Positions 1 to 40,249 of a DNA stretch of 64,000 bases are shown here, piece by piece. The notes beneath the pieces are model-generated. The model was not told where the DNA came from, made no database searches, and saw nothing but the letters and a program-made list of their open reading frames with translations. The position numbers and the translations under genes were made by a program. Source of the stretch: Macrostomum lignano. Its lineage: Eukaryota. Each line of letters starts with the position of its first letter. Within the stretch, counting starts at the first letter, position 1. The stretch lies in NCBI GenBank assembly GCA_002269645.1, contig NIVC01003789.1, forward strand, positions 62,001-126,000. Direction: 5' to 3'.

Positions 1-2246
1 ATTTATCGCGATTGAGCAGCAGAAGCAGCTGCTGCGAGGAGGCCTGCGAGACGCTTAGCTCATCAAAGAACAGACACCTATGAATGCCCAGGCGCAGACC
101 GTCGAAGGCAAAACCCTCGTCAAGGTTCGGAGTGAATACGGTCTCACGACCAAAATGCAGGCCCACCATTGCTGATTTGCCCACTCCACTGGCACCCCAT
201 AGGTACAGGATTGAGGGCACAACTACAGTCTGCCGCATCGCTGTGCAGATTGCCTGCTGAATCGCGCAGCTTCCACCTAGCGCGATGCGGTGTGTTGCCA
301 CATTGCTGCACCCCGGCTGATCCGTATTTGAAGCGGCTGTGTCGCCGCGTGGAGGCACCTGCATGCATTGTACAGGCAGAGGGTGACATGCCCCGCACAT
401 ACTCGGCCAGACAATGGTGCTGGGGAGCAGTGACACGCCGTGCTCTTCGGCACGAATTCTGCGCATCTGTTGCACCGTTGTAAAGTAATCCATGGTCTGC
501 TTCAAAAGCAGTGGATTACCGCAGACGAGATGGGGGTCGTCTGGTCGCGGTGCCATACTCCCCAGCGGATATGACATAGCCCATCTGTACAGTTGGACAA
601 CGCGGGACAGACAAGCGTCGTCGATTTCGGTGATGGCGGCTGTGGGGTCGTGCATGGTCACCCGTCATATTTCGGCAGCTGCTGAGCGCACGCTCCTGAT
701 CTCGGCGCATGTCCATCCCTGCACCGCAAAGGTGTGCAGGCTGGAGCCAGACGCGAAGAAGGAATTGTGCATGGCATTGGATCGCAAAAATATCAACAGC
801 GATCGTGTCTTGTCCACAGGGCAAGATGGAGTCGGGGCGTACGCGTCAGTCATGTGCGCGGGAGTCAGCATAAATTCGTTATCTGCCAGGCCTTATTACA
901 TACAGTAGTAGTAGTTGTTGTTTGTTGTGGTGGCGTTGGGGGATGGGTTAAAGAGTTTCTTAAAATCGCATGTTCTACGTAGAAGATAATTGTTATGAGT
1001 TTTTCAGACACTTGTGAAACGACGCAAACACTCACTCACTCACCTATGGCAAACTGTGTCGCGAAGTCGCCGCTCCAGGTGCCGTTGATCATCAGCTTCA
1101 TCTGGGGCGCGTTCTTGACGTAGTACAGCTGAATCACCGACATTGCACGATGCGAACGCCGGCTCGCATTAGCCGAAAACATTATGTCGTTTGGTATGGT
1201 GTCGCTGGGATGCAGCGACACGGACGATGCCAGAAGGCGCGAGCTCGTTCCCTTCGGCGAGGTGCTAGCCGGCTGCTGCTGCCGTTCCTCCCCCTCTTCG
1301 TGGAACAGTGGGATCTCGCCGGCCGGGCAGGTCGTCTCTGCGAGGTTATATTTAGCTGTCGCCTCCATCTCCCTGGCCGCCAGCTCGTAGCCAGAGGCCA
1401 AAGCCCGCTCGCGCTGCGTAGCACTCGACTGCGGTACGGCTGCGGCGGTGGCTCCTGTGTCGTCGGGAAACAACAATGTGAAAATGATACTACTGTAATA
1501 TGAGAGAATGTAGCATGAGCAAAAGTGTGAGCGCGAAATGCACGTAACCTACCTCTCGGGTAGAACGTCGTCGGCGGGCGGCTCGACCGAGGTCTCGGTG
1601 AGGCTGTCGGCGTCATGAATCGGAAGGCAGCAGTAGGAGCAGCAGGGCGAGTGGTGAAGCGCCAGGGCGCGCCGATGCCGCACGGGCCGATCCTAGGCTG
1701 CCGTAGAAGGTGCGGCTTCGGTGACGCTTGAGCAGCAGCGGCAGCAGAGTCAGTAGTATGGAATGAGGGCGACGCCTTCGGAATAAACTGCAGAGTCGGC
1801 GGCTGGTCGCCGCAGCCGGCGACGTGGTCAGCAGGATGCTGCTGCTGTTCGTCGTCGCTACCGCTGCTGTAGACAATTAATCGCGGCAGCTTGTTAAGCA
1901 AGCCGCGCTGCTGGCTTGGTTCCGGCGTCTCATTGGCTATGATGCGCCGAGAGGGCGTTGCGCTGCTCGTCTGCGGCGTGCTGACATCTTCTAATAGCAT
2001 CCGCCGGCGACTGGGTTGCTGCTCCTCATGAAAAGTAGTAACAGCAGCGGCAGTTTCCAACTCCTTCTCATGACAAGTAGCAACAGCAGCGGCAGCTTCC
2101 AACTCCTCCTCATGACAAGTAGCAACAGCAGCGGCAGCTTCCATCTGCAGTTGCTCCGCCTGCCGCTCTTCAGCAGCAACTTGTTCTTCGAGCTCGAGCT
2201 GCTCTTCCACACTTAACATTATCTCGTCGTCGTCGTCGTCGAACAT
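1..2246 (-). pseudogene. Spliced SF3 helicase gene (CRESS-Rep-like helicase domain with acidic leader), copy A; one internal stop; runs off window start
   Basis: Hand-built exons 2246-1553, 1454-1044 and 891-<1 with GT-AG introns in consistent phase 1. The last exon encodes YLWGASGVGKS (Walker A, ~177-210) and CLFFDE (Walker B, ~60-80). One in-frame TGA at 665-667. Clearly homologous to 29617-31973. Confidence 0.85.
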
Positions 2247-3353
2247 GCTCACGATGCTGCTGCTGGAACTGTGTGAGACGATGCGCTATTCTTCTGCGAT
2301 CTAACCATAAAGACTGCTGCTCTGCTTCTACTAGAAGGGGGAAGCTTAAGTTTATATACATTAACCTATAAACTTAATGTATATTAATACATTATTTATA
2401 CATTAATACATTGTATATTAATGTATAACTAAAGACTAGTTATAGTCCCTAATATGAAATGCGCTATCCCATTAACCATGAGCTGACGGATGGCCCAAAT
2501 TCGGGTCATGGCTCAACACCCAAAGCCAACGGGGAATTTTTTTATATCTATGGCCAAAAAACCAGCAAAATTAGCACACCCGTTCTGGACTGATGTGGCC
2601 CGAAATCGGGTCAAGTAGTGGCCAATAAGATAGTGAAAACGCACTTAGAAAAGATAGACTGTAACAAAACAAAGTAATTTCAATTACTCATATATTTTTC
2701 TTCTGTTTAAAAGTTAACGACTTAAATTATATTAGAACATAGTGAAGTGGGGTCATTTTTTTAACTGGAGTGGTCAAAAATGGAGGGAAGCTGTCACAAT
2801 TGTCACGCTGTCACGTCATTTTCTGTAGAGTTGATTTTAGAAAACTTTTAGAAAACTGGAAAGAAACAGGTAATACAAAACAACAAGCATCTAAATTTAT
2901 TATAACTCCAAATTAATACGGAATAATGTAATTTCTATCCACGATAATGCAACAAATATATTATTTTATTTCAAGGGGCCTTGGTGCTAGGACTGAGGTC
3001 TAGGAGCTGAGAGACCGGGTCCCTGGATTGATTGCGAATCCTCGCCATCTCTAACACCCCCTGCCTCCCCCGTCTCTGCGCCTGCGGTTATCACTGTGCG
3101 AATCCGCCCCTTCCTATTGTAATTCCCTCACCTCTACCCCTGTGCTCATGACCCTACCCTCTTCTACTGTTTTCTGATTCCTACGTCTCATATTAGTAGT
3201 TTCTGTAACCAGGACAATTTCTGGACTATCTGTAACCAGGGGCTGTGGTGGCACCAATTCAAAATGAAGTCAAAATAGAAAGGCAAATTTGCGGAAAGGG
3301 TGGATACTACAATATTTTCTATACTGTCTAATACACATCGCCAGGCGTCAGAC

Positions 3354-5060
3354 CTAATTGGTTTGAAATTGCATGAAGCAAGCACCAAGGCAGAGTGCTG
3401 GCGTTCCCGGGCAAGCTTCGCATACAAACACTGTCTTCTTCACTTGGCCAGCCGCATAGCATACTCGGCATCGTTTGCGTGGCCGAGCCTGGTCCCTGTG
3501 TCTGGGAGCTTTGCTTGGAGAATGAGCAGCAGCTCCATTGCCTACAGCACCGGCAGCTGCTCCATCTGGCATTCGACCGCGTCGCCTGGCAACACCAGTG
3601 TCCTCCAACAGATATTTGACTGCGAGCCTTATAAACTGCAAGAAGGTCTTTGTGCCGCCCGATTGCTTGAAGATGACCCAGGCATTTCTCACAAGCATCA
3701 GGAAAAGGTGGAACCCAAGCTTGTGGAACCAGCGCATGCTCTTACGATTGGCTAGGTAAGGGTGCATTGAAGCGTCCAGATGGTCAACACCACCCATGCT
3801 GGCACAGTATGCTAACACACTTACAGGCTTCGGCACCACCTGCACGGCACCTCCACGACGGGTACGATGGACCTGGATGCAATAAGCTTTTCCTGCTGTA
3901 TCTAGCAGATACACAGTTTTTATGCCGCTCTGCTTCCTGTCGACAAATTTGCAAGCCAGTAGGTTCCCTGAGCGAGCGAATGCAGATGAACTCGGATGTA
4001 GGTTGGCAGCTTGCAGTTCAGCTGGGATACCGCGGTTTTTCCGTACTGTTCCGGTTAGCAGCGTATCATGCTGCAACAGCCAAGTAGCCAGCCGCTGAGA
4101 CTTAAACCAACTGTCGGTCAAGACGTGGTGTCCAAGATTAAGCAAACTGCGGCACAGTTCTGCAACAACCTTCTCACTCATCGTCAAGTCCTGACACCCG
4201 AGGCCTTCACCGAACTGATTATTGACCTCAGGGAATGTGTGGACGACGAAGTTCCATAAGTACGCACTCTCACTCTCACAGATACAATACATTTTAATTC
4301 CGTATTTACTTTTCTTTGTTGGAATGTACTGTTTAAAAGCAACTCTGCCCTTGTACAAAACGAGTGTCTCATCAACCGACAGTCACTGCCGTGGCATGTA
4401 ATTGTTGCTGCACAGATGCTTTACGCTGTGCAGAAAGGGCTCCATCTTTGCCAGAGGGCCATCTCCTAAAGCCTCAGCGCAGTTGTAAAAACGCAGGCAG
4501 GACAGCAGCTGCTTGAAGCGGTCTCTTGAGAGCGAGAATGGCTTGGCCAGAAGGGAGCAATGAAACGCTGGATCGGTTGACCAGTAGTTGGCGATTTCCG
4601 GCTTCTTGTCGACACCCATCAAAAGCACGATTCCAACTAACGAACTTCATCCGTCGTTGAGTCCCGCCATTTCAACACTTGCTTCGGCAGTGCAGCCTCT
4701 GTTTCGGCTTCTTGAAAGATTCTCCAAGCCTTAGCATTAGTCCAATTGCTGAGGTCTTCGAACAACTGGTCTGAAAAAAAAGCTTTAGGAAAGCATCTTC
4801 GTTTCCATCAGCAGTTGGTGGAGGCTGCCAGTCTGGTCGGATGCCAGGTGTTCCGAGAAAATCGGGTAGGGCTGATGGCCTGTTGTCCTCATTCGGTTGA
4901 ACCATGTGCCACCCACCGGCTTGCTCGTTGTTCTCAGCGATGTCCATCTCATCGTCCTCAGACCATTCGAAAGTTTCATCAGCGGTGGAATACTGACTCG
5001 ACGAAGTATCAGAGTCGAAACTGGCGTCTGAATCTATGTATGTATATTTGCTTGAAACAG
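3354..5060 (-). mobile_element. piggyBac (PGBD-type) transposase, degenerate
   Basis: ORF 3354-4358 has YKGR..FKQYIPTKKSKYGIK, DSWF, GTVRKNRG, MGGVD and a C-terminal Cys-rich CRVC..CEAC..LC domain. Upstream fragments (4383-4628 YWST..SRDRF; 4672-4947) are broken by stops and frameshifts. TIRs and TTAA not resolved. Confidence 0.9.
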
Positions 5061-5811
5061 AAAATCTCTGTGCAAACTCTACGCGCAGGCAGTCAATAAG
5101 TATAAGTGAAGTCTATGTAGAAACTCTGTGGTACTTTAGAAACTTTTCCCGGCGGGAATGGGTGTGAGCATTACAAGAAAAAATTCTAAGAAAAAATAAG
5201 AATAGAAAAAATTTGTCAATAAACTTGCCCCGCTGTTGTAAATTCGGGCATACACAGTGTATATTTGGGCAGTCGTAGACTGTACATTGTATCCGGAAAA
5301 AGGAGGCAAAGCGGGCAGCCGTGTAATCGCGGGATGCGGTGAGTATATGCGGGCACGCTATAAAGAGACTGTATAGAAACACTATAGACTATAAGATTAT
5401 TGCATTGCATAATGTGGCTGCTATAATAAAAAAAGCGAGCGAGACATATGACACAGTAGCTAATATAACAATGTAAACGTTGTATATATAAATATAGACA
5501 TTCAATTAGAGCAGATAACAGAAGCACACAATGGGATGGGAGATAGCACAATCGCGGCACAGTGCCCAGCACAATTCCCGTTAAATATACGCGTAGCTAA
5601 GCGCAGCACAACTGTATTGTCTGACAGACAGCACTACTCACCGGCTATTAATTTAGGGGAATTGTGTTAGGCACCTTGCCGTGATTGTGCTAGCACTACA
5701 GCTACTATTGCTACTAGAGTGTTAAAAGAACAAAAGTAGGTGCACACTACAACTACTACAGTGTACTATAACTAGAATTAGTAGGCGGCTGAGGTGAGGC
5801 GAGGCAGATAA

Positions 5812-5851
5812 GAAATTGTGCTTGGCACCGGAGGTGCCAAGCAGCAATTTC
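5812..5851. repeat. Palindrome GAAATTGTGCTTGGCACC-GGA-GGTGCCAAGCAGCAATTTC downstream of the tyrosine recombinase, copy A
   Basis: Near-perfect 18/19-bp inverted repeat with one bulge; homologous to 24828-24865. Confidence 0.9.
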
Positions 5852-6210
5852 AAATCTGCCTGTGGTAATTAAGTACACACTAGCTATAGAGCGTAAAAAC
5901 AGCAAGAATCGGGGACTGGCAGCTATTTATGGCCAATAGATTGTAGCTATACAATCAGTCAATAGCTGATAGCCTGTGTGGATAATAGGCGTAGGGGTAT
6001 ATGATGCTGAACGCGGATGTTACAACAAAATAAATAGCCAACTATCTAGACAAAGAGGGAGCAAACACAACCTGCACCACGCGTAGTGCAACCACCACAG
6101 TGTCACATCGAGCGTGCAATGAAACATAGGGAGAGAAACAGCAACGACACATACATAAAAGGAGACGGCTTCCAAAGGTCAGACACATGCCTGTCGCAAA
6201 AAGTCGCTTA

Positions 6211-7768
6211 TTAGACAGAGGCCGACACGCGGCACAATTTAGGTTTCTTACTGCCGTTGCGTCTGGCTTTGCAGCCGGACGTCGCCGCCGCCGCATCGGA
6301 CCAGTCGAACTCCGCCGCAGCCGCCGCCGCTGCACTGGACAGCAACAAGGAGCGCGTGGCGTCCACAGCAGCCCGCCGTTTCGACGCGAGTTGCGGCACT
6401 GCAACCACCTCCGAATGCCGCTGCTGTTGCTGCCGCTTCTGCGACATTGGCTGCTGCCGCTGCTGAGTCGGCAGCTCCTGCGAGACCCGAGCGGCGATCA
6501 GCTCCCGCTGCTGCTGCTGCTGCTGCTTCTGGGACGTTGATGCTGCCCGCTGCTCAATCATTCCGCTGACGGTGACCTGCATTTCTGTACGACTGGCGAG
6601 CACAGCGTTCGGTGCGTAGTGTCGCATAATCATGGTTGTCGAAGTCTCATACAGCGCCGCCATCTGCTGTATTAGATCAGGGTTGTTCGCCATGACGACG
6701 TCCTGCGTCGAGCTGCGGAACACAGTTGGCCCGACGCCTTCCCGATGTAGGATGCCAGCTGCTCCGGATTCCACAGCGTGGCTGAATGTCGACGGAGACA
6801 TACGCGTGCCATTGCGGGTGCAAAATACAAAGACCTCGTCATCATAGGCGCAGTTGCCGAAGCTCGCGCCTCGACGCCACTTGCGGAGCATCTCGACAAA
6901 AGAAGTTGGCAGACAGAGCACGCTGCAACCGACAGACTGGCGTTTCTTGTGGCAAAGCCTATCATTGTCCCGCCTATAGATGCTGTTTGGCTCCAAATAG
7001 GCCAGGCGAAGGCCGCACCATGGCTGGATGCGCAGAGGATGTTGTACCGTGGCATGCAGCGCAAACCGATTGCGCAGCTGGACCTCCTCAGCGTTAAGGC
7101 GGACACCGCCGCTGCCGCTCAGCGCCGCGACAGTTTCGTCATCGTCTTCGTCATCTTCGTCAACCTCGATATCGCCAGACTCGTCGCCGTCACCGCCGCC
7201 GCCGCCGCCGCCGCCGCCGCTGCTGCCGCCGCCGCCGCTACATCGGCACAACCGATGGGTTAGCAGCAGCGGACTCCAGCCGTTGACGCTTCGGCTGCAG
7301 CGCTGTCGGGGCACTGGTGAAGGCCTCCTCGTCGGCGAAGAGTTCCAGCTTGATAGTAGCCGCGACCGAGCTTCCTTCGTTGAACGAGTCATCTTCATCA
7401 CTGCTGGAAGGCACCACGACGTTTGACACCTTCGTGATGACGCATTCATCGTCCGCGGCTGCGTTCGATTCGGCCTGGGTCGCTGGCGCGAGCACGACAG
7501 GTAGCACTTCCGGCGCCGCCGTAGCAGCCGCCTCAGCAGCGCTGCAGGCAGCCAGAAGTTCCGCGTCGAAGAAGACGTCTTCTTCGTCATCGTTAGCCGT
7601 TGGCTGGTTTGATTCGGTGGCGGCAAGATCGGCTGCAGTCGCCATCAGGTCGGCATCTTCAGCTGCATAGGCAGCTTCGAAGGCCGCATCGATTTCCGCA
7701 TCGGTCAAGGGGTACCACACGACCGAGTTGTTGCTGTTGTTGCTGTTTTTGTTGTTGCTATAGCTCAT
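6211..7768 (-). pseudogene. Tyrosine recombinase (catalytic domain present, core-binding domain apparently deleted) with acidic leader, copy A
   Basis: ORF 6211-7626 contains HPLR (Arg I), HKK (Lys), FVFCTRNG, PTVFR (Arg II) and TSTTMIMRHY (Tyr nucleophile). The acidic leader ORF 7238-7768 joins through a frameshift near the GCC repeat. Compared with copy B it lacks the zinc fingers and core-binding region. Confidence 0.8.
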
Positions 7769-16998: not shown

Positions 16999-18254
16999 TA
17001 TATCGTTACATTGTTTGAATTGATCGCAAAGTGTCGGTTTTTCGTGGCAGCTTGTTTGCTTGGTTTGAAAATTTTCTAGTTTGAAAACTAGACGGAGTGG
17101 CCGAGGGCGGCTATAGGCTGCAGTTAGGCAGACGATGGAGCGGCGATGCGCTGAAGCGGCGAGGCGCTGGTGTCGTTCAGGCATTGCTGATGATGATTGG
17201 CGGTAACAGACCGCGGACCGGCAGACGAGCTCACTTGGGGAGCTGAGATAACTTGGCGGTAACAGACCGCAGACCGGCAGAGGTTCGTCTTATAGACGAA
17301 TAGGTCAGAGCAACGTCTGACAGCAAGTCCACAATAGGACGCTTGAGAAGAAGCGCGAAAAGGTTTGAGGATTCTCATGCCGAAAACCGCTTCCTTATAT
17401 AGTCTTCCCAGCCGCCGCTCCAAGGTCGTTTCCATGACTCCCTCTCTCTGATTGGCTGCCGGCAGAATGACGTCATAATGAGTCATGATGAGAAGCATGA
17501 GAACGGCATAGCAACATAAGAAATGGGAAAATTGCGCAATCCGGAGGTGGGGTGGGGGGTAATTGGCGCAGCGGGAGGTCGCGAAAGTGTTGCGCAAGCA
17601 AACATTGAGAACAATGGGGCTGGGGTCGAGGACAAAGGAAATAGAAAACGGGAATAATTGGGGAGAATCGAGAACAATAGAAAAGCAAACATTGGAGAAA
17701 ATGTGATAATTGGGTACGAAAACGAGAACAAAAGAAAAAGAAAATCGGAGAAAATGTGATAATTGGGTGCGAATAGGAGAACAAAAGAATCGAAAACGAG
17801 AACAATAGAAGCGGAGGTGGGGTGGGTGTCGCATGAGAAATTTGGGGAGGAGAACAATAGCATGAGAAAAGGTTGCGCAAGAGAGGGGGATGAGTCATCG
17901 ATGAGTCATCGAGGGGAAAGAGGGGTCACACGACTTGTGTCACCGTTTGAGAGTTTGAGAAGGGATGGGGGAACGGTGAGCGCACGAAGTACTGTAAGTA
18001 GACACTGAAAAAGGAGGAACAGCGCAGAAAAATAGTGCAAAAAGAGACCAAAAGATGGGGGACAGGAGAAGTACATAACGAATAGGGTAGAGCGCATAGG
18101 AGATAGGGTAGAGGGGGAGGTACAGAGAGGGACAGGGAGCTCCGGAAAGGCATGTGTGGCGGCCAGGAAGACGGAACCGAGGCAGCAGGAGGTGCAGCAG
18201 AGCGGGAATCTGCAGGCCTGGTCAGAGACTGAGCAGTCGCTCAGTGACGTAGCT

Positions 18255-24220: not shown

Positions 24221-24827
24221 ACTGCGTCGCTATCCGTACTGACTTACCTCATGCTGCTTACGTTTGCTGTTTTTTCATATTTGTCTAAAACTTGATAAAG
24301 CCACGTTAAAGCGAGCGTTAAAGTGTCAACCCCAGCCTGTATATGGACATTCAATGTTATCCTGCCGAGTGCGTTAATGTGGGCCATAGAGAGTGCGTGA
24401 ATGCGGTTGCGGCCATAGACAAAAAGAGTAACTATGTTTTATCATAGAACTTGAAACATAGAGGAGATTGAATACATGTATATTATGACTGAAGGTGGTG
24501 TATACGACAATTGCAAACCAAGCAATTATATAGAAAAAGAGTAATAGCACAATTGCGGCAGTGTGCGTAGCATAATTCCCTTTAAAGAGTATATAGATAT
24601 AGATATGTATATGTACCTGTAGCTGGTACTTATAAAAATGGCTGGCTGGCTGGCTGGCTGGCTGGAAGGCTAGTGGCTATATTTTCAGGAAATTGTGCTT
24701 AGCATAATTCCTAAATAGTGCGCGACATACCAGCTAGATAGATAGCAAGCAGCAAGTAAAAATTATCAATATGCAATTGCACAGCTATTTCAATATAGTT
24801 ATAAATGCCATGCAACATTGAGCGCTA

Positions 24828-24865
24828 GAAATAGTGCTTGGCACCTCGGTGCCAAGCACTATTTC
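24828..24865. repeat. Perfect palindrome GAAATAGTGCTTGGCACC-TC-GGTGCCAAGCACTATTTC
   Basis: 18-bp perfect inverted repeat with a 2-nt centre, flanked on both sides by AGCGCT; homolog of 5812-5851. Confidence 0.95.
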
Positions 24866-25260
24866 AAAGCGCTTTGAACCCTTCAACCTGCAGCCATGTC
24901 CAACCAACCAGCCGACGAAGTAGTAGCTACTGCTAATATTAAAACCAACACTATACGACTATAGTCTAATAAACGCTAGGAAAAATGTTATAACAATGGG
25001 CACGTAAACAATAAGAGAAAGGGATAGAACGCATAACAACGCGCGCAATATGAGGCGCAGATGCATTGTAATTATGAGATGAAAATATTGAAAAATATTG
25101 GGGCCAACATACATATAAAGGAGAGATGAGACAGTTACAACAAAAAAGAGAATCATCTACATTTCACTATTACTAATTAATTCAGTTATGTTAATAGCAG
25201 CACTTATTAATTAATTAATTTACCTCAAGAGACACTCTAAGTTTGCATAAAAATTTGCAG

Positions 25261-25436
25261 CAATGGTAAAGCGCACATTTACTAGATTTCATATAATGGT
25301 AAAGCGGTATTTAAAGTTTTAACGTTGTGGTAAAGCGGCCAACAGTTGAAATTTGCAGACAATGGTAAAGCGGTACTATTTAAGTTTAAACGTTGTGGTA
25401 AAGCGGCAAACAGTTAAAATGGTAAAGAGGCGGTAG
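25261..25436. repeat. Array of RTGGTAAAGCG motifs (iteron-like)
   Basis: Six near-identical motifs about 25-35 bp apart, with a ~66-bp higher-order duplication. Confidence 0.8.
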
Positions 25437-25471
25437 ACGCGCAGCATGCCTTGAAATTGATGCTTGGCACC

Positions 25472-27420
25472 TACCCACAATGTCCTGCTTGGAGCTCCGA
25501 AAAATATTCGGGCAGACGCCGGAACGACCGAGTATAGCTTTGGCATGATCGACAACCGCCTGGCTGAAGGTGGAAATGGACATCCGCTCACCTCGGTTGG
25601 TGCACAGCACAAACGGCGAGTTGGCGACGCCGACCATGTCGTTGCAATGACGGCCGTTTCGCCAGGTGAGCAGCAGCTCAATGAATGCGGTCGGCACTGT
25701 GAGAACGCTGCAGCCGACAGACTTTATTTTCTTATGGCTGACCTGGCGACCAGGCAGCCGGATGGTCGAATAGCCGTTGTCATGATTGTCGCGCCGACTG
25801 GCGCTACCCGGCCGGATGTGCGCTATGCGGAGACCGCGCCATGGCCGGACGCGCAGCGGATGCATCGCAGTGGCATGCAGAGCAAATCGATTGCGCATCT
25901 TAACAAAGCTGTCCTCGTCGGCTGGACCAGAGGCGACCAGTGCGGCGTAGTCGTCCAGGATGGTGCGCCACTCCACCGGGGTTAACAGCTTCTCTTTCTT
26001 TCTGTCGTGGTGCAGCGGCGCATCCAGCCTATACTCAAGGTCGTGCGCTGGCGAATAGTTTTGAGCCGCTACTGAAACAGCTTGCACCTGTTTTCCAGCT
26101 CGGCTGCAATGTCGGCCGGCAGTTGCATGCGCTCCACCAGCGATTGAAGATGCGCGCGGTCGTGCTCAACGTAGGCTTGCATGTACTGCATGCATTTTAT
26201 TAGCGCTTGCGCCCTGTTTCTAACTGTGCCGGAGCTATTGCTGGTGGCTCGAACCTCCGTTGCGGCGGTCGTTGGGTTGGCTAAGCAACAGACTAAATCT
26301 CGCGGCCTCGACGACTGGACAGCTCTTGTCGGCGGCGCCGGCTGCTGCTGCTGCTGCTGCTGTCATCTTTGAGCAGACCGACAAGATCAGCAAAAAGGTG
26401 TCAATGAGAGCGTCAAGATGGCCGTCATGGGCTGGGTTGCGCACGCCTGTTGCATCGTTCCAATACAATGACTGGATTACACGCAGCTGCTTTATCAGCG
26501 GAGCATCGGCCGAATACTGCGCCAATAGCGAAGAATGCCGCAGTGTAATCACAGCCAAGGCATCACGCGCCGCGATCGCCTCCTTGGCTGACATGGTCGT
26601 CGTCTTTGTCGTCGTCTCCGCTGCACCGCCGACGCTGACTGCCGCAGTCGAAGACGCGCTTGTCGCCGCCGTCACCGCCGCTACACCGCTGGCACCCGCC
26701 GCGATCGCCTTCTCGGCTGACATGGTCGCCGACGCCGCCGCCGCTGCACCGCCGCTGCTTACTGCCGCTGCCACAGTCGAAGACGCGCTTGCCGCCGCAG
26801 ACGCCGCCTCCGTTGCTGCACCGCTGGCACTGTCATTGTCGTTGACGATGTTGACGGGTTGATCACCAGATGGCATAATGACGTGGTGGCAGAATATTCT
26901 GTCAACTTAGCGCCGGCGGCGACCAGTTTTGCGTGCTTAGCGGCATGTTTCGTTGCGTCTCGGTAATAGCAACGACAGTCAGCGCAGTAGGTCTCGCGAC
27001 GGACTCTCTTGACGCTGACGCTGCTACTACTGGCACTGCTGCGGTCTCCTGTTGGGCGCAAAATCAGGCTTCGCCACAACCAGGTAGTGCGCCTGTCCAG
27101 CGTCCAGTCGTCTGTCGTCGCGTCGTCGCCGCCATCGCCTACCGGCTGCTCCTTGATCCATGAGACATGTTTCGCCGCAAAGTGAGTCTTCAGGGCGTCG
27201 ACACGCATCACGGCGGTGCAGTCCGGCACAGGGCATTTTCGAGCGTAGCGGATATTTCTGTTCTGGTTCGGCTTCTCGACAACCGACGGCGGCGGGGCAT
27301 CTGCAGCAGTGGCGGCGGTGGTGTCGAAGCCAGCAGCTGCCGAAGACTCGCTTGCAGCGCTTTCTGTGTGTGTGCGGATGGATTGTGTATTGATATCGAA
27401 ATCAGTTTTTGCTGCTTCAA
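25472..27420 (-). pseudogene. C2H2 zinc finger plus tyrosine recombinase gene, copy B; frameshifted; lacks the C-terminal Tyr segment
   Basis: Fingers CPVPDC..LKTHFAAKH and YCADCRCYYRDATKHAAKH; core-binding-like SGTVRNRAQAL (~26230-26100); catalytic HPLR, HKK and CPNIFRSS. Homology to copy A ends at QDIV (~25475). A possible 5' exon lies at 27914-27746. Confidence 0.8.
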
Positions 27421-29616
27421 ATGCTGCTTCTTATTTAATAATAACTCCTATAATCAAAAACTAAAAACTACAAAACCTGTTGCTGCTGCTGGAGGAGACA
27501 AAACAGCTGTTGATGCTGATGACCGCCGCATGCCAGGAGAATTAGACATCACGGCCGAGTATTGGACGGGCCGAAAGCTGATAGGTCGCCGCTGTCTGCA
27601 GTGGTATTAAATGCAAAGTGAGATCGTCTTTTGTAAATTTAGGAAGGTCAACTTAACGGAGCCTAACCGACAGAGTAGCTTAGCTTATTAGAGAAAAATT
27701 GGAATAACTCTTCTTCTTTAAATCACATAGATCGTTAACAATCACCTGATACTGCTGCTGCTGCTGCTGCTGCTGCTGCGCTCGCTTCGTCACAACACAG
27801 GTCTGCTGCTGCTAATTCTTCAGCTTGATGGTGATCACTAGAGTGATGCGGAGGAGCTTCGAAATCGTTGCCGTAGCCGTCGCCGAAGAGGAGCCGCAGC
27901 AAACTGTCAAACATGATTTTATACGATTCCTTTATTATTACAGTCTTGAGCCTCTATAGAAAGAGCTGAGAGCTAATTGGCTAAGCTTTGTGAATTAATT
28001 ACTCTGTTTGGCTCAGTCAAGCTATTTTAAAAATTTAACTCCTTTTTCTTAACCTTTTATAAAGATAGTCTGAGAGAAGCTGGGACGAGAGGAATGGCCA
28101 TAGACAAAATATTCCAGTGTCTAAGGCCCACCTCAGTGACACCGCTTTAACGCAATTCAAAGCCCAGTCTGTACAAGCTGACGGTTTATAGACCGATCGA
28201 TCGATAATTTGGTTGGCCATAGACAGTTGCAGAAGATCTAAACTCAGAAAACCTCCCGTGTACAGGCTAAATCTTTAACACTGCCGCCGATTGCCGATTC
28301 TATTATAATGTATAGACTAGACTAATAATGGCTAATACAATTAAAGGCAGACAGGATTAAAATAACCAAAGCTGCAAATCCCATACAGTTATTCATTCGT
28401 CAAAAGATGACACAACAACTTTATGAAATTGAAAATTGATAATTTAAAAACATTGCTGAATATATGGATGGTCAGAATGTTGAAATGTGAAATTGTAGAT
28501 ACGCAGCAAAAACTGCAACAAAACTGGTTTCAACAACAACAGAGAAAAGCAGAAGAAACAACCATCAATCTGAATATAGAAAATCAATCGATCAATCTTG
28601 TAAAAACAAATCCACTTCCGGATTGCAACACCGTCAGTCCAAGTCATTAAATGTGTGAGTGCGTGCAGCCAAAGCTGTTGCCACACTACCCTTCTGTTAA
28701 GATGATAGAAAAAAATGTCTATTATATTTTTAGGCAATTCTGCTTGGCACAAATCCGAAATTGTGCTAAAGACCTATACGACCAGTCATTTTACGGCACT
28801 TGACTAGCATAATTGCGTCCCAATGCTTGGCATAATTCCTATAAAATAGTATACTTATATATCGGGGGCTATATCTGCATGCACAATATTAATTGTTTGC
28901 CGATAACTGTCGTCGCAGTCAATATGCATTTCACTGCTTTTATTTGCATTTGATGTAATCTATTTTAGGGCTACACTGCCTCTACATCACTGCTGTCTTT
29001 GATTTTGCGATTTAGTAGTAGCGATACTATTAGTCAGATAGAAGCACAAACCGCAGCTGCTGCTATTGAGACATCTATCTATCTTGATTGACAGGGAGGG
29101 AGCTGCTAACATGCTGCTGGCTGATGCAAACACACACAATATTAAAAAGATAGAACAGAACAAAAACTTGAATGCTGAAACAATTAAAGAGCCGCAGCTC
29201 ATATCGTATTCAACTAATAAAACTAGCTAATCCACTCTAGCCCTCCCTAACCGAGTATAATTATTTGTTAGATTTTAGATGCAACAACATTCGTTACCTG
29301 TGTGTGTGCTTGCGTGCGTGCGCTTTACCTTTTTTGCGACTGATGGACCTAGCGTGCGCCACCAATAACTTGTTTAACAACAACAACAACAACAACGTCT
29401 TTGATTTAGTAAATCTATTTTTGTAACTATGACAATTAACCTACTGCATAATCTTAGATGGGATTCTAATTTTGAGAAATTTTTGTGCTTCCGCTTATAC
29501 CTAATCTGTTATAGTCAACTTAAATTTTTTGATTCAGCATTCTTTTAATTAGTCTTTTTGGTCTATTGGCGGCGGCGGCGGCATCATCAGCGAACCCCAG
29601 CTAGCTGCCTGGCGAC

Positions 29617-31973
29617 CTAGACGTTGGCGGCGGCGTCCGCGGAGCCTTCCTGCTGGCAGCCAATGCATTCAAAGACGTTGTGCTCCATATGGAAGCACCT
29701 TCCACTGGCGGAAACGCGCCGCACAAAGTCAACTGGCAATTCTGCTGGCGGCACATGGCCCGCAAATATGATACTGCCGACCCATTCGCTCTGCACATGG
29801 GCCTTGTGCTTTGCGTTTATGACAAATTTATCCCTATTCATGAGCAGCAGAAGCTGGCCCTTTGCCGCCTGTACCGGCTGCAGTTCGTCAAAGAATAGGC
29901 ACTTGTGTATGCCTAATTTTAATCCGTCGAACGGAAAGGCTTCGGAGAGGTCCGGCGCGTAGACAGTCTCTCGGCCGAAATGTAAGCCGACCATCGCCGA
30001 CTTGCCCACTCCACTGGGGCCCCACAAATAAATTATTGCTGGAACAGCCAGTCCTTGTCGCATGGCTGTGTAAATTTCACGCTGTATTGCACAGGCGCCA
30101 CCAAGCGACAGTCTGTGTGTTGTTGTTGCTACGCAACGACGCCGCATTTAATGTCGCCTTCGACGCCACGACAGCTGGCAATTGGCAGACGCCGCACATG
30201 CTTGGCCGTACCAGATTGGCCGGCATGGGGCTGATGCCTAGCTCCTCCGCCCGGATGCGGCGCATCATCTGGACAGAGCTGAAATAGTCCAGCGCCTTCT
30301 AAGCAACAACGGATTGCCGCACACTAGCTGCGGATCGTCGGGCCTCGGCTGCATACAGCCCAAAGGGTAGGACATGGCCCACCGATACAACAACACATTC
30401 CTGGACAGGCAGCCGTCGTCAATGTCCGTGACGGCTGCTGTCGGGTCGTTAAGTGTCACGCGGCGTATCTCCGCGTTTGCACTCCGTGCACTCCGGATCT
30501 CAGCGTTTGTCCACCCTTTAACGGCGAACGCGTCCTCGCTGGACCCCGACGCAAACAGGCTGCGCAGTCTGCCTATCAGATCTACTGTGCTATGTAGAGC
30601 ATTGGTGCGGACAAAGACTAGCACAGACTTGGTGCCAGCTATTGGACAGCTGGCAGTCGGGGCGTATGGGTCAACCATATGGGTTGGAGATAGGATAAAT
30701 TCATTCTCCGCTAAGCCTATAGTTTTAGCATTATTTAAGTCAATGTTGTTGTTGTTGTTGTTTTTAATTATTGGTTGGTTTGGCAATTTTAGTTTTTTGT
30801 CGGGGATGGGGTGGGTGTGTGATTAATTTAAAATGGTGCGCAAAAAATCGCAATAATACTCAGCTACATGATTGTTTTTTCTACCAAACCAAGATACATG
30901 CATGCAAAATATGTATGTATATGAAAGCGTTTTTACTCACCAATTGCCAGTTGTGCCGCGTAACTGTTGCTCCATGCGCTGTTCAGCAGCATCTTGAATT
31001 GCGGCGCGTTGCGGACATGGGAGAGCTGGACAACGGACATTGCCCGGAATGCCCTTCGGCTTGTCTCGGCCGCGGCGGTGACGCTCCGGGAAACAGCCTC
31101 GGCCGGATGCAGTGGCACGCGTGGCGCCAGGAGCCGCGATGTGGTGCACTTTGGTTGCTGTTGCTGCTGCCGATGGTCGTCCTGCTGTACACCCAGTGCC
31201 GATGCAGCGTCATCGGCATCAGACGACAAACTGTTATTGGCGCCGTCGTATCCAGCTGTTGCCTCATGGGCGGCCGCAGCCATCGAATATACTGCTGCTG
31301 GTTCTGTCGCAGGCGACAGCGGATGCGGAGCTTTGAATATAGGTTCAGCAGCATAACTTGAAGCAGCAGCAGCTTGTCGACGTTGGTCGCTGGTAAACAA
31401 CGAGTATGATTTAACGGACGGTGACGGAGTCCTTGAAGCCGCAAAAGCGAATCGAGCCGCTGTCGTCGATCCCGCAGGTTGGGCGAAGGCGAAAGGCCTG
31501 ACTCCGACTGCCGCCCCGATGATGCGCGGCTGCCGTTTCAGTGCTGGCTTTGGTACTGTTGACGACGCTCCACTATTGCTGGAGGCAGCGGCGGCGTCCC
31601 TATCGGTGGCGATGCACTGCACCTTGGCCGCCGGAGACTGATGTTGCTGTTGTTGGCTCGGCAGTTCGCGTTTCAACGATTGTTGAGAGTGCATCTGTGC
31701 CGGTTATGTCTTGTAGGCAGAGCGAATCGGCGTGTCAGCATCGTCGTCGTCGCTGTCCGGGACGACGATGCCCGTAATGGTGCAATCGGCATCGACGTCA
31801 GCGTCGTTGGTATTCAGCGCCGGTGGCGGCGATGAAGCTGGGGTGTCTGCGGCGAACAGAGATGCCGCCTCCAGTTCGGCGAACGCCTCCAGTTCGGCCT
31901 CTTCGCAGGCAGCCAGTAGATCATCGTCTAACACAAAGTCGTCATCATCGTCAGGAAAATTGTTGGTTGCCAT
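29617..31973 (-). pseudogene. Spliced SF3 helicase gene, copy B
   Basis: Exon 31973-30941 (in-frame TAA at 31704), phase-1 GT-AG intron 30940-30717, exon 30716-29617 with two frameshifts. Motifs: Walker A GPSGVGKS, Walker B LFFDE, motif B' VINAKHK, motif C IIFAGH, Arg finger FVRR. Confidence 0.85.
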
Positions 31974-33149
31974 TATTCGCGATGAAGCTGACTACAGAGC
32001 TGGAACGGCGGGCTGTCTTTTAATGGATGGATCATTATTATGCCTTGCACACTGTTTTCTGTTCCTGCTTTTCTTTCTTTCTTTCTTTTTCGGGTCACGG
32101 ACATTGTAGCTAGACGTAGCTAATAGGACCGGGGGCGTAGCCCCATGCAGCCGGGGCGCTGACCCTGCGCGGGCGGGCAGTAGACGGCGGAATCCAATTT
32201 GCGGCCTGCGGCGGGTGGCCAGAGAGCGTGGGGACCCGAGTCCCGGTGCGCAGGGCTCCTCCGCAGACCGACTTACGCTGTAAAAACCGCCATCCACCGC
32301 CAACCCAACGTTGGGGGACAGCTCTCCCAGGCTGCATACCCGGAGGTGAGACCAATTCGTCACCCCGTCGATGGCAGGGACGCACGGAGCTCCTGCCACA
32401 TTGGCGGGGTGTCCAGGGGCGCGACGTGGACGCTGGTCTCGTGCCACCCTCTGTTCCTGCTGCTGCTGCTGCTGATGCGATATACATTAAGGAAAAAGTG
32501 CTGCTAGGCTATAGCTACTGATTATTTGTCTATGGTAGAAAGACTCAGTTTGAGACTAGCTAAAGCAATATATATATATTTTTTAAGGGAAAAATGCTAG
32601 GCACAGCTGCCGCGTTGTGCTATTAATAACATTTTTATACTAGGTAGTCTATGGCATGGCGTGTGAGTAGTGACTGACTGCCGCATTAACGCACTCTACC
32701 GCTTTAACACACTCGATATCGCTTTCACGCAGGAGCCGAATTAACGTAGCCGCGTTAACGCAATTTTTACCGCTTACACTCAGAAGCATATTTGTCAACG
32801 TTTGTTTAAAGCTTCCTAACTAGGTAAACTAATTGTAAGGTATAGCAATCTGACCCTAACCTGCCTAATAATATTACCGTTAGTAAATAACAACTGTGTT
32901 TTACGTTTGTTATGACAACAATAAACGTTTACCGTTTTTTCTTACTTGTCGTCGTATATTTAAAGCATCGTAACCACGTAAACTAATTGTAAAGTAACAA
33001 TTTGACTGTAACGTAAGTAACAATATTAACAATAACAAGTAACAAGCGTGCTTAGCAGTCCGAAAACCTATAATAATCTTTATATTGGCCCCTAAAGTTG
33101 CATATACGAAGCAGACGCATCCCGGAAGTCGCTTGTGTGCTGTTGCATC

Positions 33150-35915: not shown

Positions 35916-38900
35916 TGTTGTGCTTTTGGCTTTTAGCCTTTAGCAATTGTCACTAGCGGTCTGCTGACCTCTGACGCGTCTATTATTTATTTCATAACTC
36001 AATAGCATGGTTCAATTCATCAACGCAGTCGCGTAACAAAAATGTCTATGGCAAAGCCATCAACCCACAACACCCTCCCTCTTCTATAGGTAGGTGTACA
36101 ATTATCACTCAGGTGCGATAAAAAATTCTAGTTTTCTTGGCCAAGCGTTCGCTTCGCCTGGGTGACGGCTTGGATTGAACTCCAACCTCAGTCTGTTGCT
36201 GTTGTGCTCTCTCAGCTTGTTCTGTTCCCGGTAGTATCTCAGTGTCTGTCGATGACGGACGCGTCTGTTGGCCGTCGTCACTTGGACCGTTGCCACCGGG
36301 CTTGGAATCCCCCATTTCCCTAGTTCCGTGAGCCTCAGGTACCTCACCGATTCGTAGTTGATCGAGGTGGGTCTTTAGATTTCGTCCAGTCTCTGTGGTG
36401 ACGACTGCTGTGTTGCTGCCAAGCATTTTGGCGAATCTCACAGTTCGTGGCTCATGAGAACTCGATGCACGGTAGATGAGTGATTCTTCTGGGATCCACT
36501 TGGACTGAGTGCTGCTCTCCGAGATGGGGAGTCTTATTTGTCTGCCGTTCAACAACTCGGACGGTGATGCTTGCTGCTTCCCTTTGGCAGCTCTGTAGAA
36601 CAGTAGAAATCTGTCAATACTTCTTTGGGATAAACCATTGGTCTTGATTGTCTCTTTGACGGTTCGCACCATTCGCTCTGCAATGCCGTTGCTCTGTGGA
36701 TGGTAGGCGGGCGTTGTGATGTGCGAACAGCCAATCTGGGTGAGCCAGCCGGTCACCGCTTCGCTCACAAAACTAGGGCCGTTGTCTGACACGAGACACT
36801 TGGGCACCCCCTGTTGTGAGAACAATCTTCTAAGTCTGGAAATGACTGTGTCGGCCTTCATGTCGCTCGTGATGAAGACTTCCGGGTAGCTCGAGTGCGC
36901 ATCCACAATTATGAGTAGGTACTTGCCCTCTATCGGACCGGCAAAATCAATGTGCACTCGCTCCCAGGGGTTGTCAGGTTCTGGCCACGAGTGCCGAAAG
37001 TTCTTATTTCTGGACTTGTACGCGTTGCACACGTTGCATCGTCCAATGTAGTCAGCGATGTCACGGTCCATCTGTGGCCACCAGAACTGTTCCCTCAAAA
37101 TTGACTTTGACTTTTCCACCCCAAGGTGCGTTGAGTGTACAGCTGCCAGGGCAGTTTCTCTCAGGACACGAGGCAATACAATTCTGTTCATTCTGTAAAT
37201 AATTCCATCATTGACAGTTAGCTCATCTTAAACCTTCGAGTAGCCGAGTAGGTGTGGGTCGTCAAATAGATTATTGTTAATTATGGCTGCGCCCAGGCAT
37301 CTGAACTCCGGGTCCTCTCTGGTTGCGTGTGCAATGCGATCCAGCTGAATTACTCCCGGGTTGTCAGCTTCGAGGAGTCCGATCGATGCTGTCTGTGCAT
37401 TCGGCTTAGCGGGCACCAGTCGAGATAGCGCATCCGACAGCATTAGCTTTGATGGTCGATACTGTATGACATAGTCATAAGCAGCTAGCATGATTGCCCA
37501 TCGTTGTAGTCGAGCTGAAACTCTGGTGGGCAGCTGTTTGTCTGGCGCGAATATGTATGTGAGGGGCCGGTGATCAGTTATCAGTGTGAACCTCCGGCCA
37601 TACAAGAACCGATGGCATCTTTGAATGCACCAAACCAGTGCCAGGCCTTCACGCTCTATTTGCGAATATTTTGTTTCGGCGTCAGACAGAGTCTTGCTCA
37701 TGTACAGCACGACTTGACCGCTTTGTGTCAACACTCCGCCCAGAGCTCGCTGAGAACTGTCGCATTCCAGTTCAATGGGCTTCTCCGGATCAAATATTTG
37801 AAGACTCGATTGATCAGAGAGAGTGACCTTGATTTCGTCAAATGCTATTTGACACTCCTTTGTCCACACGAAGTCCTCATTTTTCTTTCTTAGTCGATTG
37901 ATAGGCTTGGTCAGTGCAGCTAGGTTTCTGATGAACCTGCCGCTAAAATTTACGAGACCCAGGAAAGATTCAAGCTCGCCAACGTTCTGCGGTGGTGTCA
38001 TGTCCTGGATTGCCTTCACTTTGGCTGGGTCCGGCTTGAGCTGATCTCCTTCCAATAAGTAGCCTAGAAACTTGATCGAAGTCTTGCGGAATTCACTTTT
38101 CGCCGTGTTGATCTTCAATCCTTGCTGGTTTAGTCGATGCAATACTTCTGTCTCACGAACTGCCAATTGTTCTACGCCTTTGCCGCATATCAATATGTCG
38201 TCTACGTAGGCAATGACGCCAGGAATTCCTTGTAGGACTTGGCTAATGTACCGCTGGAAGATCGCAGGTGCTGTTTTCACTCCGAACGGAAGCTTGTTGA
38301 AAGCGAACATCCCAAATGGTGTTGACATTACTGTCAGCTCTTTGGAAGCTTCATCTAGTGGGATCTGGTGATAAGCTTTCTCTAGGTCCAGACGAGTGTA
38401 TATCCGGCTGCCAGCAGCAGTTGCAATCACTTCGTCAGGTGCAGGCATCGGATATGAATCGTTGATAAGATGAGAATTGATTGTCACCTTGTAGTCGACG
38501 CAAAGTCTGAGCTTTCCAGAAGGTTTCTTGACCACGACAATTGGTGAGGCCCATTCACTGAACTTGACGGGCTTGATGGTGTCTTCTTCAAGCAACCGAT
38601 CGATTTCATCCTTGACTTCCTGTCTGAGTGCGAAGGGTAGCGGCCTGGGTTTGCAATGAATTGGAGTGGTTCCTTCCTTGATCTTAAGAGTTACTGGTGG
38701 AAATTCGCATGACTGGGTTGCCGATGTGCAGCTGTTGTCTACAGCGTTTAGCGTGAAATTGAGCTTGTCTCGGCCAACCAGAACAAACTGCGATTCCACA
38801 ATGAAGAATGTGATTGGAATGAACTCGTCATTGTACTCCAACTCAGTGTCGTGTGTTCCAAAGACCTTCATCTGCGTATCAGCGTATGTTGTCAGAACAG

Positions 38901-40249
38901 TGTCTGTAGGTGTCAGTTTTGGACAACCCAATCGTTTCCAGATCGTTTTTGACATTACCGAAACTCCTGCCCCAGTATCGATTTGTGCGTTCACGCTAAG
39001 CATCGACCCGCTCGTGTGTCTGAGCCTAACAGGCACGGTGTAGCTATCAACGGGATGTCGAATGTGAAAACAATCCTCCTGTTCAGCTTCGCTTGCATCT
39101 ACAAAGCTTGTGGTCCTTGGGCACACTGCAGCTCGCCTAAATTGACCAGATGCTGACGGGCTTTTGAACGATTTTCGGCCTTTGCCAAAACCAGTTGATT
39201 TCGTTTTGCAAACTGTTGCGAAGTGGTTTTGCATGCCACATTTGTTGCACGTTTTTCCTTTCGCAGGACACCCTCCATTGGAGCCATGCATTGTGCCACA
39301 TCTGCCACACTTGGAGCTTGTAGAATGGGAGCCTCTGGTCACCGATGCTGAAATTTTCATTACTTCAGAAGACTGCGGCTGACTGGTGCAACCCTTTAGT
39401 ATTTGCGTTTGTGATAGGTTCTGGTGCGCCTCAGCGATGTTGATAGCTGTCTCAAACGTGAGAGTGCTGAAGTCCTGTTCCAATAACTTGCTGATGGCCA
39501 CCTTGTCATTCAAACCGAATACGAGCTGATCTCTCAGTCTCTCATCTCTGGATAGGCCAAACTGACACTTGTCTGCCTGCATGCAGAGTTGCTGTGCATA
39601 CTCACGAATGCTCATTGATGCCGTGCGAGTGATATGCTGGAAATTGAATCTCTCAGCCATGACGAACGTCTTTGGTTCCAGGATGCTGGCCAGTAGTTTG
39701 GTCAGTTCATCGAAGCTCTTTTCTCCCGGCTTCTTGGGAGCGGCTCGGTCTGCCAATGCGTCGTACAGCTTGGTGCTGAGCTTCATCAGCAGCAGCTTGT
39801 TTTTCGTGTCGTCCTGCCAGCCGTTGAGTTCGCTGCACAGTGTGAATCGGTCCAACCACCTCTGGAAGTTCGAACTTTCATCGAGTTTTTCGATGTCAAC
39901 TTGCTGTCCTCTCGATACTTGTGCGCTTGGGTTCTGCGCTGTCGCTGTTGCCGACTTTGTCGCTTGGACTGATTTCGACGAGATCGCAAGCGGTGGTGCT
40001 TTGTCGCTCGAAACCGTTTTACCAACTCCTTTAGTTGGCGATGCTGGCGTACTTCCAGGCATTTTCGTAGCCTATGCTTGCCGACGCCACTGTTGTGCTT
40101 TTGGCTTTTAGCCTTTAGCAATTGTCAGTCTAGCGGTCTGCTGACCTCTGACGCGTCTATTATTTATTTCATAACTCAATAGCATGGTTCAATTCATCAA
40201 CGCAGTCGCGTGACAAAAATGTCTATGGCAAAGCCATCAACCCACAACA
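35916..40249 (-). mobile_element. Full-length Ty3/Gypsy LTR retrotransposon with short LTRs
   Basis: LTRs 35916-36072 and 40091-40249 (TG..CA, few differences), 5-bp TSD ATTCT, PBS TGGCG next to the 5' LTR, PPT at 36073-36084. Confidence 0.95.
36109..40062 (-). CDS. Gypsy gag-pol polyprotein (CCHC, protease, RT, RNase H, integrase) with one premature stop
   Basis: IDTGAG protease, YVDD RT, RNase H ECDSS..DALSR, integrase HHCC and D,D-35-E. ORFs 37228-40062 and 36109-37191 are in the same frame, separated by one TAA plus 12 codons. Confidence 0.92.

Follow-up and report, generated by a model that had tools for sequence, protein, structure and literature searches.

Within a 64,000-nucleotide stretch of the genome of the flatworm Macrostomum lignano (assembly GCA_002269645.1, of the Mlig_3_7 series, contig NIVC01003789.1, positions 62,001 to 126,000; 'the window' below), we identified an ~8.5-kb unit, copy A, whose two co-oriented minus-strand genes (~24300-32800) are enclosed by modular inverted termini. 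One gene is spliced and encodes a homologue of the replication-initiator (Rep) proteins of CRESS (circular Rep-encoding single-stranded) DNA viruses, with a superfamily 3 (SF3) helicase domain and without nuclease residues; the other encodes zinc-finger-like motifs and a probable tyrosine recombinase (YR). We judge the chance to be somewhat better than even that these are dead, diverged M. lignano copies of an undescribed ~8.5-kb element family, which would have paired a nuclease-dead Rep helicase with a zinc-finger-like YR, integrated, and replicated as an episome. The analysis covered three loci of M. lignano and a small number of short contigs from elsewhere. An earlier note, made from the window sequence alone, had proposed the pairing of a YR with a CRESS-like SF3 helicase, and the pairing held: the genes are linked within common inverted ends in copy A and are linked again at a further locus (L002), the YR call being probable.

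Modular inverted ends around two genes

The earlier note had placed the ends of the unit at 24413 and 32654, on CCATAGAC...GTCTATGG. Both sequences are present, at 24413 and at 32647-32654, and the two-gene unit, its inverted ends near these positions and the common orientation of its genes all stood up to analysis, but the 8-mer is not specific and the termini lie further out. The window contains 16 occurrences of CCATAGAC where 1.3 would be expected (an ~12-fold excess), in unrelated contexts that include both long terminal repeats (LTRs) of a Gypsy element. The 8-mer therefore cannot alone define an end, and as a bare terminal repeat it was ruled out for being too frequent. The true termini reach ~110-130 bp beyond the proposed ends on each side. 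They are inverted, ~330 bp long and modular, running in the order iteron array, CCATAGAC and a 45-60-nt motif (Table 1). The iteron GCGTTAAWGCGG has 13 matches in the window compared with 3.6 in shuffled sequences, and 8 of the 13 fall within the two terminal arrays, in inverted orientation. Inward of the arrays, motif M1 and the inverted segment 32568-32625 (M6) are 83% identical over 60 nt.

Further copies of the 45-nt motif lie in the 2.4-kb region between the two genes, as the pair M4/M5, whose hairpin energy in copy A was not significant by DNA folding, and downstream of the YR gene, where the M1-M2-M3 layout recurs in a second, partial copy (2a, described below). Within the window, the motif is confined to copy A and this second copy.

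The 8-mer CCATAGAC is also found ten times in the 20.7-kb M. lignano locus L002, including a 35-nt-period tandem (L002 20600-20705). Its other sites in the window include 8452, 8567, 9308, 16134, 16869, 21992, 36044, 40221, 47995, 50076 and 61715, and it looks like a motif spread genome-wide or over multiple repeats.

Domain searches of 24300-32782 returned no reverse transcriptase (RT), RNase H, capsid or polymerase, in agreement with the earlier claim, and no third open reading frame (ORF) conserved between copies, nor any other conserved gene or domain, was found in the element. The RT genes of the window are parts of separate LTR and non-LTR elements.

A Rep homologue without nuclease residues and a probable recombinase

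The first exon of the Rep-like gene consists of an acidic leader and a long low-complexity region and ends at a GTGAGT donor; the second begins after an AG. The donor, position and phase of the intron are identical in three M. lignano copies (A, 2b and L002), and in a metagenomic homologue that has no intron (L005) the reading frame crosses the predicted junction exactly. Conservation in three copies and this intron-less junction together support the intron well. The acidic leader and the spliced structure given in the earlier note are both confirmed.

Between the leader and the helicase lies a domain of ~200 residues that the earlier note had listed as of no recognizable kind. We aligned the ~150 residues preceding the helicase from six members (copy A, copy 2b, L002, L003, the L005 type and P0010) and compared them with the N-termini of Rep proteins that retain HUH motifs. 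The two align by hhalign at E 1.8e-5 (probability 78%) over 106 columns, which extend from motif II through motif III into the conserved Trp and Asp-Asp-Pro segments ahead of the helicase. The domain is thus not unknown but resembles a Rep nuclease domain from which the catalytic residues are gone: none of the six members has a catalytic residue in the HxH or YxxK columns. The same columns are non-catalytic in the uninterrupted ORFs of P0010 and L005 (444 aa), and the loss is therefore a trait of the family and not a product of pseudogene decay. By sequence comparison, then, the product of the spliced gene is homologous to Rep over its full length but has lost the residues that nicking requires, an identity that the earlier note, which saw the helicase part, had missed. 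When either the Rep-like domain or the HUH-bearing N-termini were compared by hhalign with a single circovirus-type Rep N-terminus, nothing was returned.

In the helicase domain, Walker A, Walker B, the B' Lys and the Arg finger, whose motifs the earlier note had listed, vary little or not at all across the family alignment; the claimed motif C is there too but without its usual Asn. Searching 1.84 billion representative proteins with the helicase profile gave 16 matches. They include the M. lignano paralogue PAA62424.1 (P0001; E 1.3e-21) and short relatives from metagenomes and SRA assemblies. Also matched were HUH-bearing Reps (E 2.6e-7 to 8e-4) on contigs of 2.1-2.6 kb, with the canonical Rep motifs in order at their N-termini (a Thr-containing motif I, HxH and YxxK), and one bona fide CRESS Rep (Pfam Viral_Rep, 37.7 bits; RNA_helicase, 34.7 bits). 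P0009, a bacterial repeat protein, was ruled out as a spurious match. Against the PDB, the family-only helicase profile matched CRESS Rep helicase structures at E 0.01-0.03, amid generic P-loop matches; with the HUH-bearing relatives added, the top matches were adeno-associated virus (AAV) Rep40/Rep68, and CRESS Rep chains, including 7lar ('ATP-dependent helicase Rep'), followed close behind amid generic AAA+ chains. On these profile comparisons, the closest relatives of the helicase are CRESS Reps.

The family is sparsely represented elsewhere. A word-indexed search of 5.8 billion proteins gave no match to the helicase ORF and no homologue of the YR domain, and only two short metagenomic proteins were returned for the family profile. 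Neither window protein reached a curated threshold in Pfam, PHROGs or NCBIfam, and no relative was found when JGI metagenome contigs and IMG/VR were scanned with the YR and helicase profiles.

Several foreign sequences bear on the Rep-like gene. L005 (JGI metagenome 3300040801, contig Ga0450804_2604286) carries its uninterrupted 444-aa Rep-like ORF at 1531-2865, 52% identical to the L002 copy. It has no intron, and the contig could derive from a transcript or hold a retro-copy belonging to a related organism. In L003 (2-598 / 896-1702) and L007 (471-626 / 764-1009), the Rep-like coding sequence is split by gaps of 140-300 nt, which suggests introns at other positions and hence a eukaryotic genomic origin. 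Relatives appear to exist in other eukaryotes. L006 (an SRR14381426 assembly of 2347 nt) encodes an HUH-intact Rep (P0008) and a capsid-like ORF with an Arg-rich N-terminus; it is probably the genome of a CRESS-type virus, and its Rep is the closest nuclease-competent relative of the flatworm protein. A conserved His-x3-Glu-Cys-x-Gly-x-Cys follows the helicase at the C-terminus (window 29617-29700, and homologues) in the flatworm-type family. This possible metal-binding motif is missing in the CRESS-type relatives.

Such viral relatives raise the alternative that the unit is not an autonomous class of element but what is left of a larger virus, such as a Polinton-like virus (PLV) or another midsize double-stranded DNA virus, or the end module of such a virus standing alone, or else a satellite that needs a helper to supply its capsid. 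We consider this unlikely. A YR and an SF3 helicase beside terminal inverted repeats are indeed described in PLVs and virophages (PMC11296320), the HUH-intact helicase relatives belong to real capsid-encoding viruses, and gene loss is conceivable in decayed copies. Yet the iteron arrays of copy A enclose just two genes, their flanks being unrelated repeats and a ubiquitin-hydrolase (UCH) fragment; no third conserved ORF was found between the copies; the helicase is related to CRESS Reps and not to PLV primase-helicases; and the IMG/VR scans gave no relative.

In the second gene, the 5' part carries two zinc-finger-like motifs, laid out in the same way at L002, although the two zinc-finger-like regions have no similarity by BLASTP. 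Of the two C2H2 fingers of the earlier description, only one is complete in the ORF as it stands. The recombinase part gives matches that are weak and concordant: the best or only ones in four libraries are tyrosine recombinases, aligned on the catalytic half. They include a PHROG_1 integrase (E 0.0083); XerD and XerC, the only NCBIfam matches of the copy 2a YR (E 0.05); and, for a profile of three YR sequences, XerA and the integrase 3nkh, the only two PDB matches, which cover the C-terminal region and the box of the second Arg. In Pfam, nothing significant was matched by the catalytic part. The YR sequences of the window are homologous to the L002 ORF (hhalign E 2.2e-5), and the Box I Arg, the Lys, the second Arg and the C-terminal Tyr are common to copy 2a and L002. 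We conclude that the catalytic part of this gene encodes a probable, not proven, very divergent tyrosine recombinase.

Linked, decayed copies and a possible mechanism

Coding sequence homologous to copy A (42-70% amino-acid identity) occupies 1-8450 of the window. The earlier note took this for one second gene set; it is homologous and diverged, and the intron position is kept, but it comprises two partial copies, 2a and 2b, head to tail. The leader of copy 2a is 41% identical to that of copy A and is followed within ~100 nt by the catalytic half of the YR, the zinc-finger region being absent; relative to copy A there is one ~5.7-kb internal deletion and one change of frame, and the YR is open through the presumed catalytic Tyr. 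Copy 2a (~5543-8380) is best read, from this alignment, as an internally deleted element. The end motifs on its YR side make up an inverted repeat with strong hairpin potential (-38.7 kcal/mol by DNA folding, z = -6.5); its Rep-side end was not identified. Reading the second set as a circular permutation of copy A was considered and, on the leader alignment, dropped for a deleted copy plus a second copy.

The window segment 8380-8575, next to copy 2a, holds GCCGAGG three to four times and then two CCATAGAC (+) 115 nt apart. It resembles the element termini in an orientation that is wrong for 2a, and may be the end of another, unrelated element. No ends of its own were found for the piggyBac-like element whose transposase ORF (3354-4358) lies between 2a and 2b.

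At the third locus, L002 (contig NIVC01001938.1, around PAA62424.1), a Rep-like gene with leader, intron and helicase is accompanied, ~4 kb away on the opposite strand, by a zinc-finger-like ORF and then a recombinase ORF. The two genes are convergent, and a Tc1-like remnant and a satellite lie between them. The relative orientation of the Rep-like and YR genes is thus not fixed, and the two are linked at all three M. lignano loci, which represent four diverged lineages.

That an endogenous CRESS Rep fragment came by chance, in a region rich in repeats, to lie beside a Crypton-like YR transposon unrelated to it is, we think, very unlikely. In its favour, the region is a dense transposon mosaic, and endogenous Rep fragments are common in invertebrate genomes; against it stand the co-occurrence at three of three loci in four diverged lineages and the end motifs common to both genes. 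The Rep gene itself, with its intron, long leader, family-wide substitution of nuclease residues and purifying selection (below), does not look like a one-off viral insertion.

Harder to set aside is the proposal that a YR-bearing and a Rep-bearing unit are separate mobile units with common end motifs that land adjacent to one another or flip, although this too we hold to be quite unlikely. Each copy A gene does lie between inverted 45-nt motifs, M1(+)...M4(-) and M5(+)...M6(-), with an M4-M5 gap of 36 bp; the genes are convergent at L002 and co-oriented in copy A; and 2a and 2b stand head to tail. The outermost structures of copy A, however (the iteron arrays, CCATAGAC and the best-matching pair, M1/M6), enclose both genes, the single deletion in copy 2a from Rep leader to YR shows that the genes of a second lineage were ordered and oriented alike, and no solo unit of either kind was seen in the examined loci.

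Between lineages, synonymous differences per site (pS) are saturated at 0.62-0.86 and nonsynonymous differences (pN) reach 0.19-0.31, giving pN/pS of 0.22-0.27 for the Rep-like gene and a dN/dS of 0.30 for the YR. With synonymous sites saturated and pN low, the lineages therefore diverged as functional genes before each copy died. Both genes were under past purifying selection (ratios of 0.22-0.30), as the earlier note had supposed from the conserved amino acids and intron position.

Could these instead be host genes, domesticated from a virus or transposon, with the inverted structures incidental? The paralogue PAA62424.1 is part of the GenBank annotation, which is transcript-based and excludes annotated repeats, so that the L002 copy is inferred to be transcribed and to lie outside the repeat library that was used. 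Domestication nevertheless seems extremely unlikely, given frame breaks or stops in all copies, the PAA62424.1 locus included, and multiple diverged copies with other transposons in or beside them.

If a single two-gene element is taken as the source of these copies, as we favour, its mechanism can be proposed, every step of which we infer. The YR would carry out DNA breakage and joining, that is, integration and excision as a circle, and possibly also inversion or resolution at the repeated 45-nt motifs; inversion there would account for the flipped arrangement at L002 and for the head-to-tail 2a and 2b. A Rep without HUH and Tyr makes a canonical rolling-circle start impossible. Yet selection preserved both the helicase and the nuclease-type domain, and iterons lie at the ends and between the genes. 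On the simplest reading, what was once the nuclease domain would bind these iterons, at the termini or between the genes, and the SF3 helicase might then melt the origin and recruit host replication. Double-stranded episomal replication would in this way take the place of rolling-circle nicking, as with polyomavirus large T and papillomavirus E1.

A number of observations weigh against this explanation. Every examined copy is a pseudogene (Table 1), and since all are broken no function can be read from them directly; to call the element 'self-replicating' and 'YR-integrating', as the earlier note did, is thus to go beyond its copies. The YR assignment draws on motifs and on profile matches below threshold. 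Conservation does not extend to the His of the HxxR box that is usual in such enzymes, and the C-terminal segment that bears the presumed catalytic Tyr in 2a and L002 is gone from copy A. The motif C Asn of the helicase is replaced in the window copy and most family members, which makes ATPase competence uncertain. The HUH-bearing N-termini used as comparators had no Pfam or PDB match, and their HUH call comes from the three canonical motifs. AlphaFold2 models built on shallow alignments were too poor for use, for the YR domain (predicted local distance difference test (pLDDT) 35.5) and a Rep homologue (pLDDT 47.7) alike. Gene orientation at L002 differs from that in copy A, and termini could not be defined there. 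Finally, linkage is seen at n=3 M. lignano loci, the foreign relatives being on contigs too short to show a YR.

More tentatively, and with less confidence than in the existence of the family itself, we suggest an unclassified kind of eukaryotic mobile or episomal element, in which a CRESS Rep may have lost its nuclease to become an origin-binding helicase and a YR may have taken over breakage and joining. Such a change would repeat independently, within the genome of an animal, the transition from single- to double-stranded DNA replicons proposed for the ancestors of polyoma- and papillomaviruses. It would also be a natural case of a viral Rep under selection after nuclease-residue loss, with a bearing on how double-stranded replicons arise from rolling-circle ones. 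No description of a eukaryotic element pairing a YR with a CRESS-type Rep was found in searches of the full-text literature. We place the element among YR-integrating replicons, with a real chance that it will merit its own class once more copies are known. The family is absent from the protein databases searched and may sit unclassified in flatworm repeat annotation.

Table 1 Features of the element copies in the window (window coordinates unless a locus is named; copy A unless stated)
Feature	Position	Strand	Basis or remark
Element copy A, full length ~8.5 kb, with Rep-like and zinc-finger-like YR genes	24300..32782	-	Modular inverted termini flank both genes
Left terminal array, iteron GCGTTAAWGCGG x4 (12 nt)	24303..24406	+	Motif match
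CCATAGAC, one module of left terminus	24413..24420	+	8-mer match
Subterminal motif M1 (TAGCACAAT..GCGGCA..GTGCC.AGCA.AATTCCC)	24545..24601	+	Inverted copy of M6
M2 (24678-24721) and palindromic M3 (24827-24868), downstream of YR gene	24678..24868		M2 is the inverted partner of M1
Zinc-finger-like YR gene	25386..27229	-	Three reading-frame pieces
YR catalytic-domain homology	25473..25985	-	Box I Arg, Lys, second Arg
Intergenic cluster	28098..28224		CCATAGAC x2 (+), iteron x1 (-)
Intergenic inverted pair of 45-nt motif	28715..28861		M4 (-) 28715-28768, M5 (+) 28805-28861
Rep-like gene	29617..31973	-	Acidic leader, low-complexity region, intron, HUH-less Rep domain, SF3 helicase, C-terminal His/Cys motif
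SF3 helicase core	29650..30100	-	Walker A, Walker B, B', Arg finger; motif C Asn replaced
Rep nuclease-like domain without HUH and YxxK residues	30310..30716	-	hhalign
Intron of Rep-like gene	30717..30940	-	GTGAGT...AG, phase 1
Right subterminal region	32528..32654	-	CCATAGAC at 32528-32535 and 32647-32654, M6 (32562-32625) between
Right terminal array, iteron x4-6	32681..32782	-	Motif match; inverted relative to left array
Copy 2b Rep-like gene with own leader	1..2252	-	Cut by window start inside helicase domain
Intron of copy 2b Rep-like gene	892..1043	-	Position and phase as in copy A
piggyBac-like transposase ORF between 2a and 2b	3354..4358	-	DDE_Tnp_1_7 E 5.7e-34; zf-Tnp_2
Copy 2a YR-side end motifs	5543..5854		Inverted pair 5543-5589 / 5649-5697, palindrome 5811-5854
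Copy 2a remnant gene	6211..7768	-	Rep-type acidic leader, then YR catalytic half
Breaks, Rep-like gene, copy A			One in-frame stop, two frameshifts
Breaks, Rep-like gene, copy 2b (part inside window)			One frameshift, one in-frame stop
Breaks, Rep-like gene, L002			At least one frameshift
Breaks, YR gene, copy A			Two changes of frame (frameshift or intron), loss of C-terminal Tyr segment
Breaks, copy 2a			One large internal deletion, one change of frame

Genomic surroundings and comparison with known systems

The window is a repeat mosaic of two Gypsy-like elements, an RNase H non-LTR fragment, a piggyBac-like transposase, satellites and a UCH fragment, in which no tRNA or Rfam family was found. 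An apparently young Ty3/Gypsy element at 35953-40249 has 120-nt LTR matches that are 99% identical and open ORFs of 944 aa (annotated in GenBank) and 360 aa. Direct repeats at 44290-45219 and 55185-56138, 92-100% identical and ~10.9 kb apart, enclose the second Gypsy-like element and the RNase H non-LTR fragment, possibly as LTRs belonging to a large nested element. A satellite with a 36-nt period extends for ~1.2 kb (59174-60340), and a 33-nt repeat extends a kinesin-like ORF (63213-63575). The ORFs at 8697-8987 (+) and 16136-16633 (-), neither with a Pfam match, share by eye only a similar acidic/helical N-terminal region; together with an inverted repeat at 15750-15826 / 17010-17086, they may represent another uncharacterised repeat.

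Current schemes for eukaryotic transposons recognize Cryptons (YR alone), DIRS-like elements (YR and RT), Helitrons and Replitrons (HUH Rep) and Polintons (polymerase and integrase), and if the two flatworm genes form one element it has no slot among them. Like a Crypton, it is an animal DNA element without RT, whose probable YR is the only candidate breakage-joining enzyme; unlike a Crypton, it has a second, replication-type gene and modular inverted termini of ~330 bp. The flatworm YR reached no significant similarity to any named YR family, and Cryptons are thus set apart by these features and not by YR sequence. From DIRS, Ngaro and VIPER elements it differs in having no RT or RNase H in 24300-32782, and from Helitrons in that its helicase is SF3 and not SF1 (Pif1-like) and that HUH residues are absent.

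With the Reps that CRESS-DNA viruses encode, the flatworm protein shares a collinear arrangement of nuclease-type N-terminal domain, linker and PF00910-type SF3 helicase. It departs from them in the family-wide absence of HUH and the catalytic Tyr, in the replaced motif C Asn, and in its ~340-aa acidic, low-complexity N-terminal extension and spliceosomal intron. The unit as a whole is 8.5 kb long and chromosomal, has a recombinase partner and has no capsid-like ORF, whereas one is present in the viral relative L006.

Two kinds of replicon offer functional parallels. Polyomavirus large T and papillomavirus E1 fuse a nuclease-inactive origin-binding domain, held to be Rep-derived, to an SF3 helicase and replicate a double-stranded DNA episome with host enzymes. 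The flatworm Rep-like protein may be analogous to them in function; no specific sequence relationship was detected, weak PPV_E1_C matches being seen only in relatives and not in the window protein, and the flatworm element differs in having a recombinase partner and no capsid genes. Plasmids of the yeast 2-micron type and prokaryotic integrative plasmids are, similarly, small replicons with a YR and inverted repeats. A YR with an SF3-type replication helicase is a common layout among the prokaryotic integrative plasmids. The 2-micron plasmid encodes neither a helicase nor an initiator. The bracketed modules of copy A and the flip at L002 recall, by analogy, Flp-mediated inversion in the 2-micron plasmid. 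The flatworm element is known here as chromosomal copies, unlike these plasmids, and the prokaryotic examples belong to another domain of life.

The earlier note held that the element matches none of the groups with which it was compared. It does depart from each group tested in defining features, but its combination of YR, SF3 helicase and inverted repeats has a counterpart in PLVs and virophages, where a YR and a primase-SF3 helicase beside terminal inverted repeats make up a described, possibly mobile 'end module' whose repeats are proposed to serve as both recombination substrate and origin (PMC11296320). In the flatworm element, likewise, neighbouring genes for a YR and an SF3 replication helicase adjoin terminal inverted repeats. 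It differs in that its helicase is Rep-derived and not a primase-helicase, and in having no capsid, protease or packaging genes, a comparison whose sensitivity is limited by copy decay. In concept, the inverted-repeat end module of PLVs and virophages, with its YR and SF3 helicase, is the closest known system to the flatworm element.

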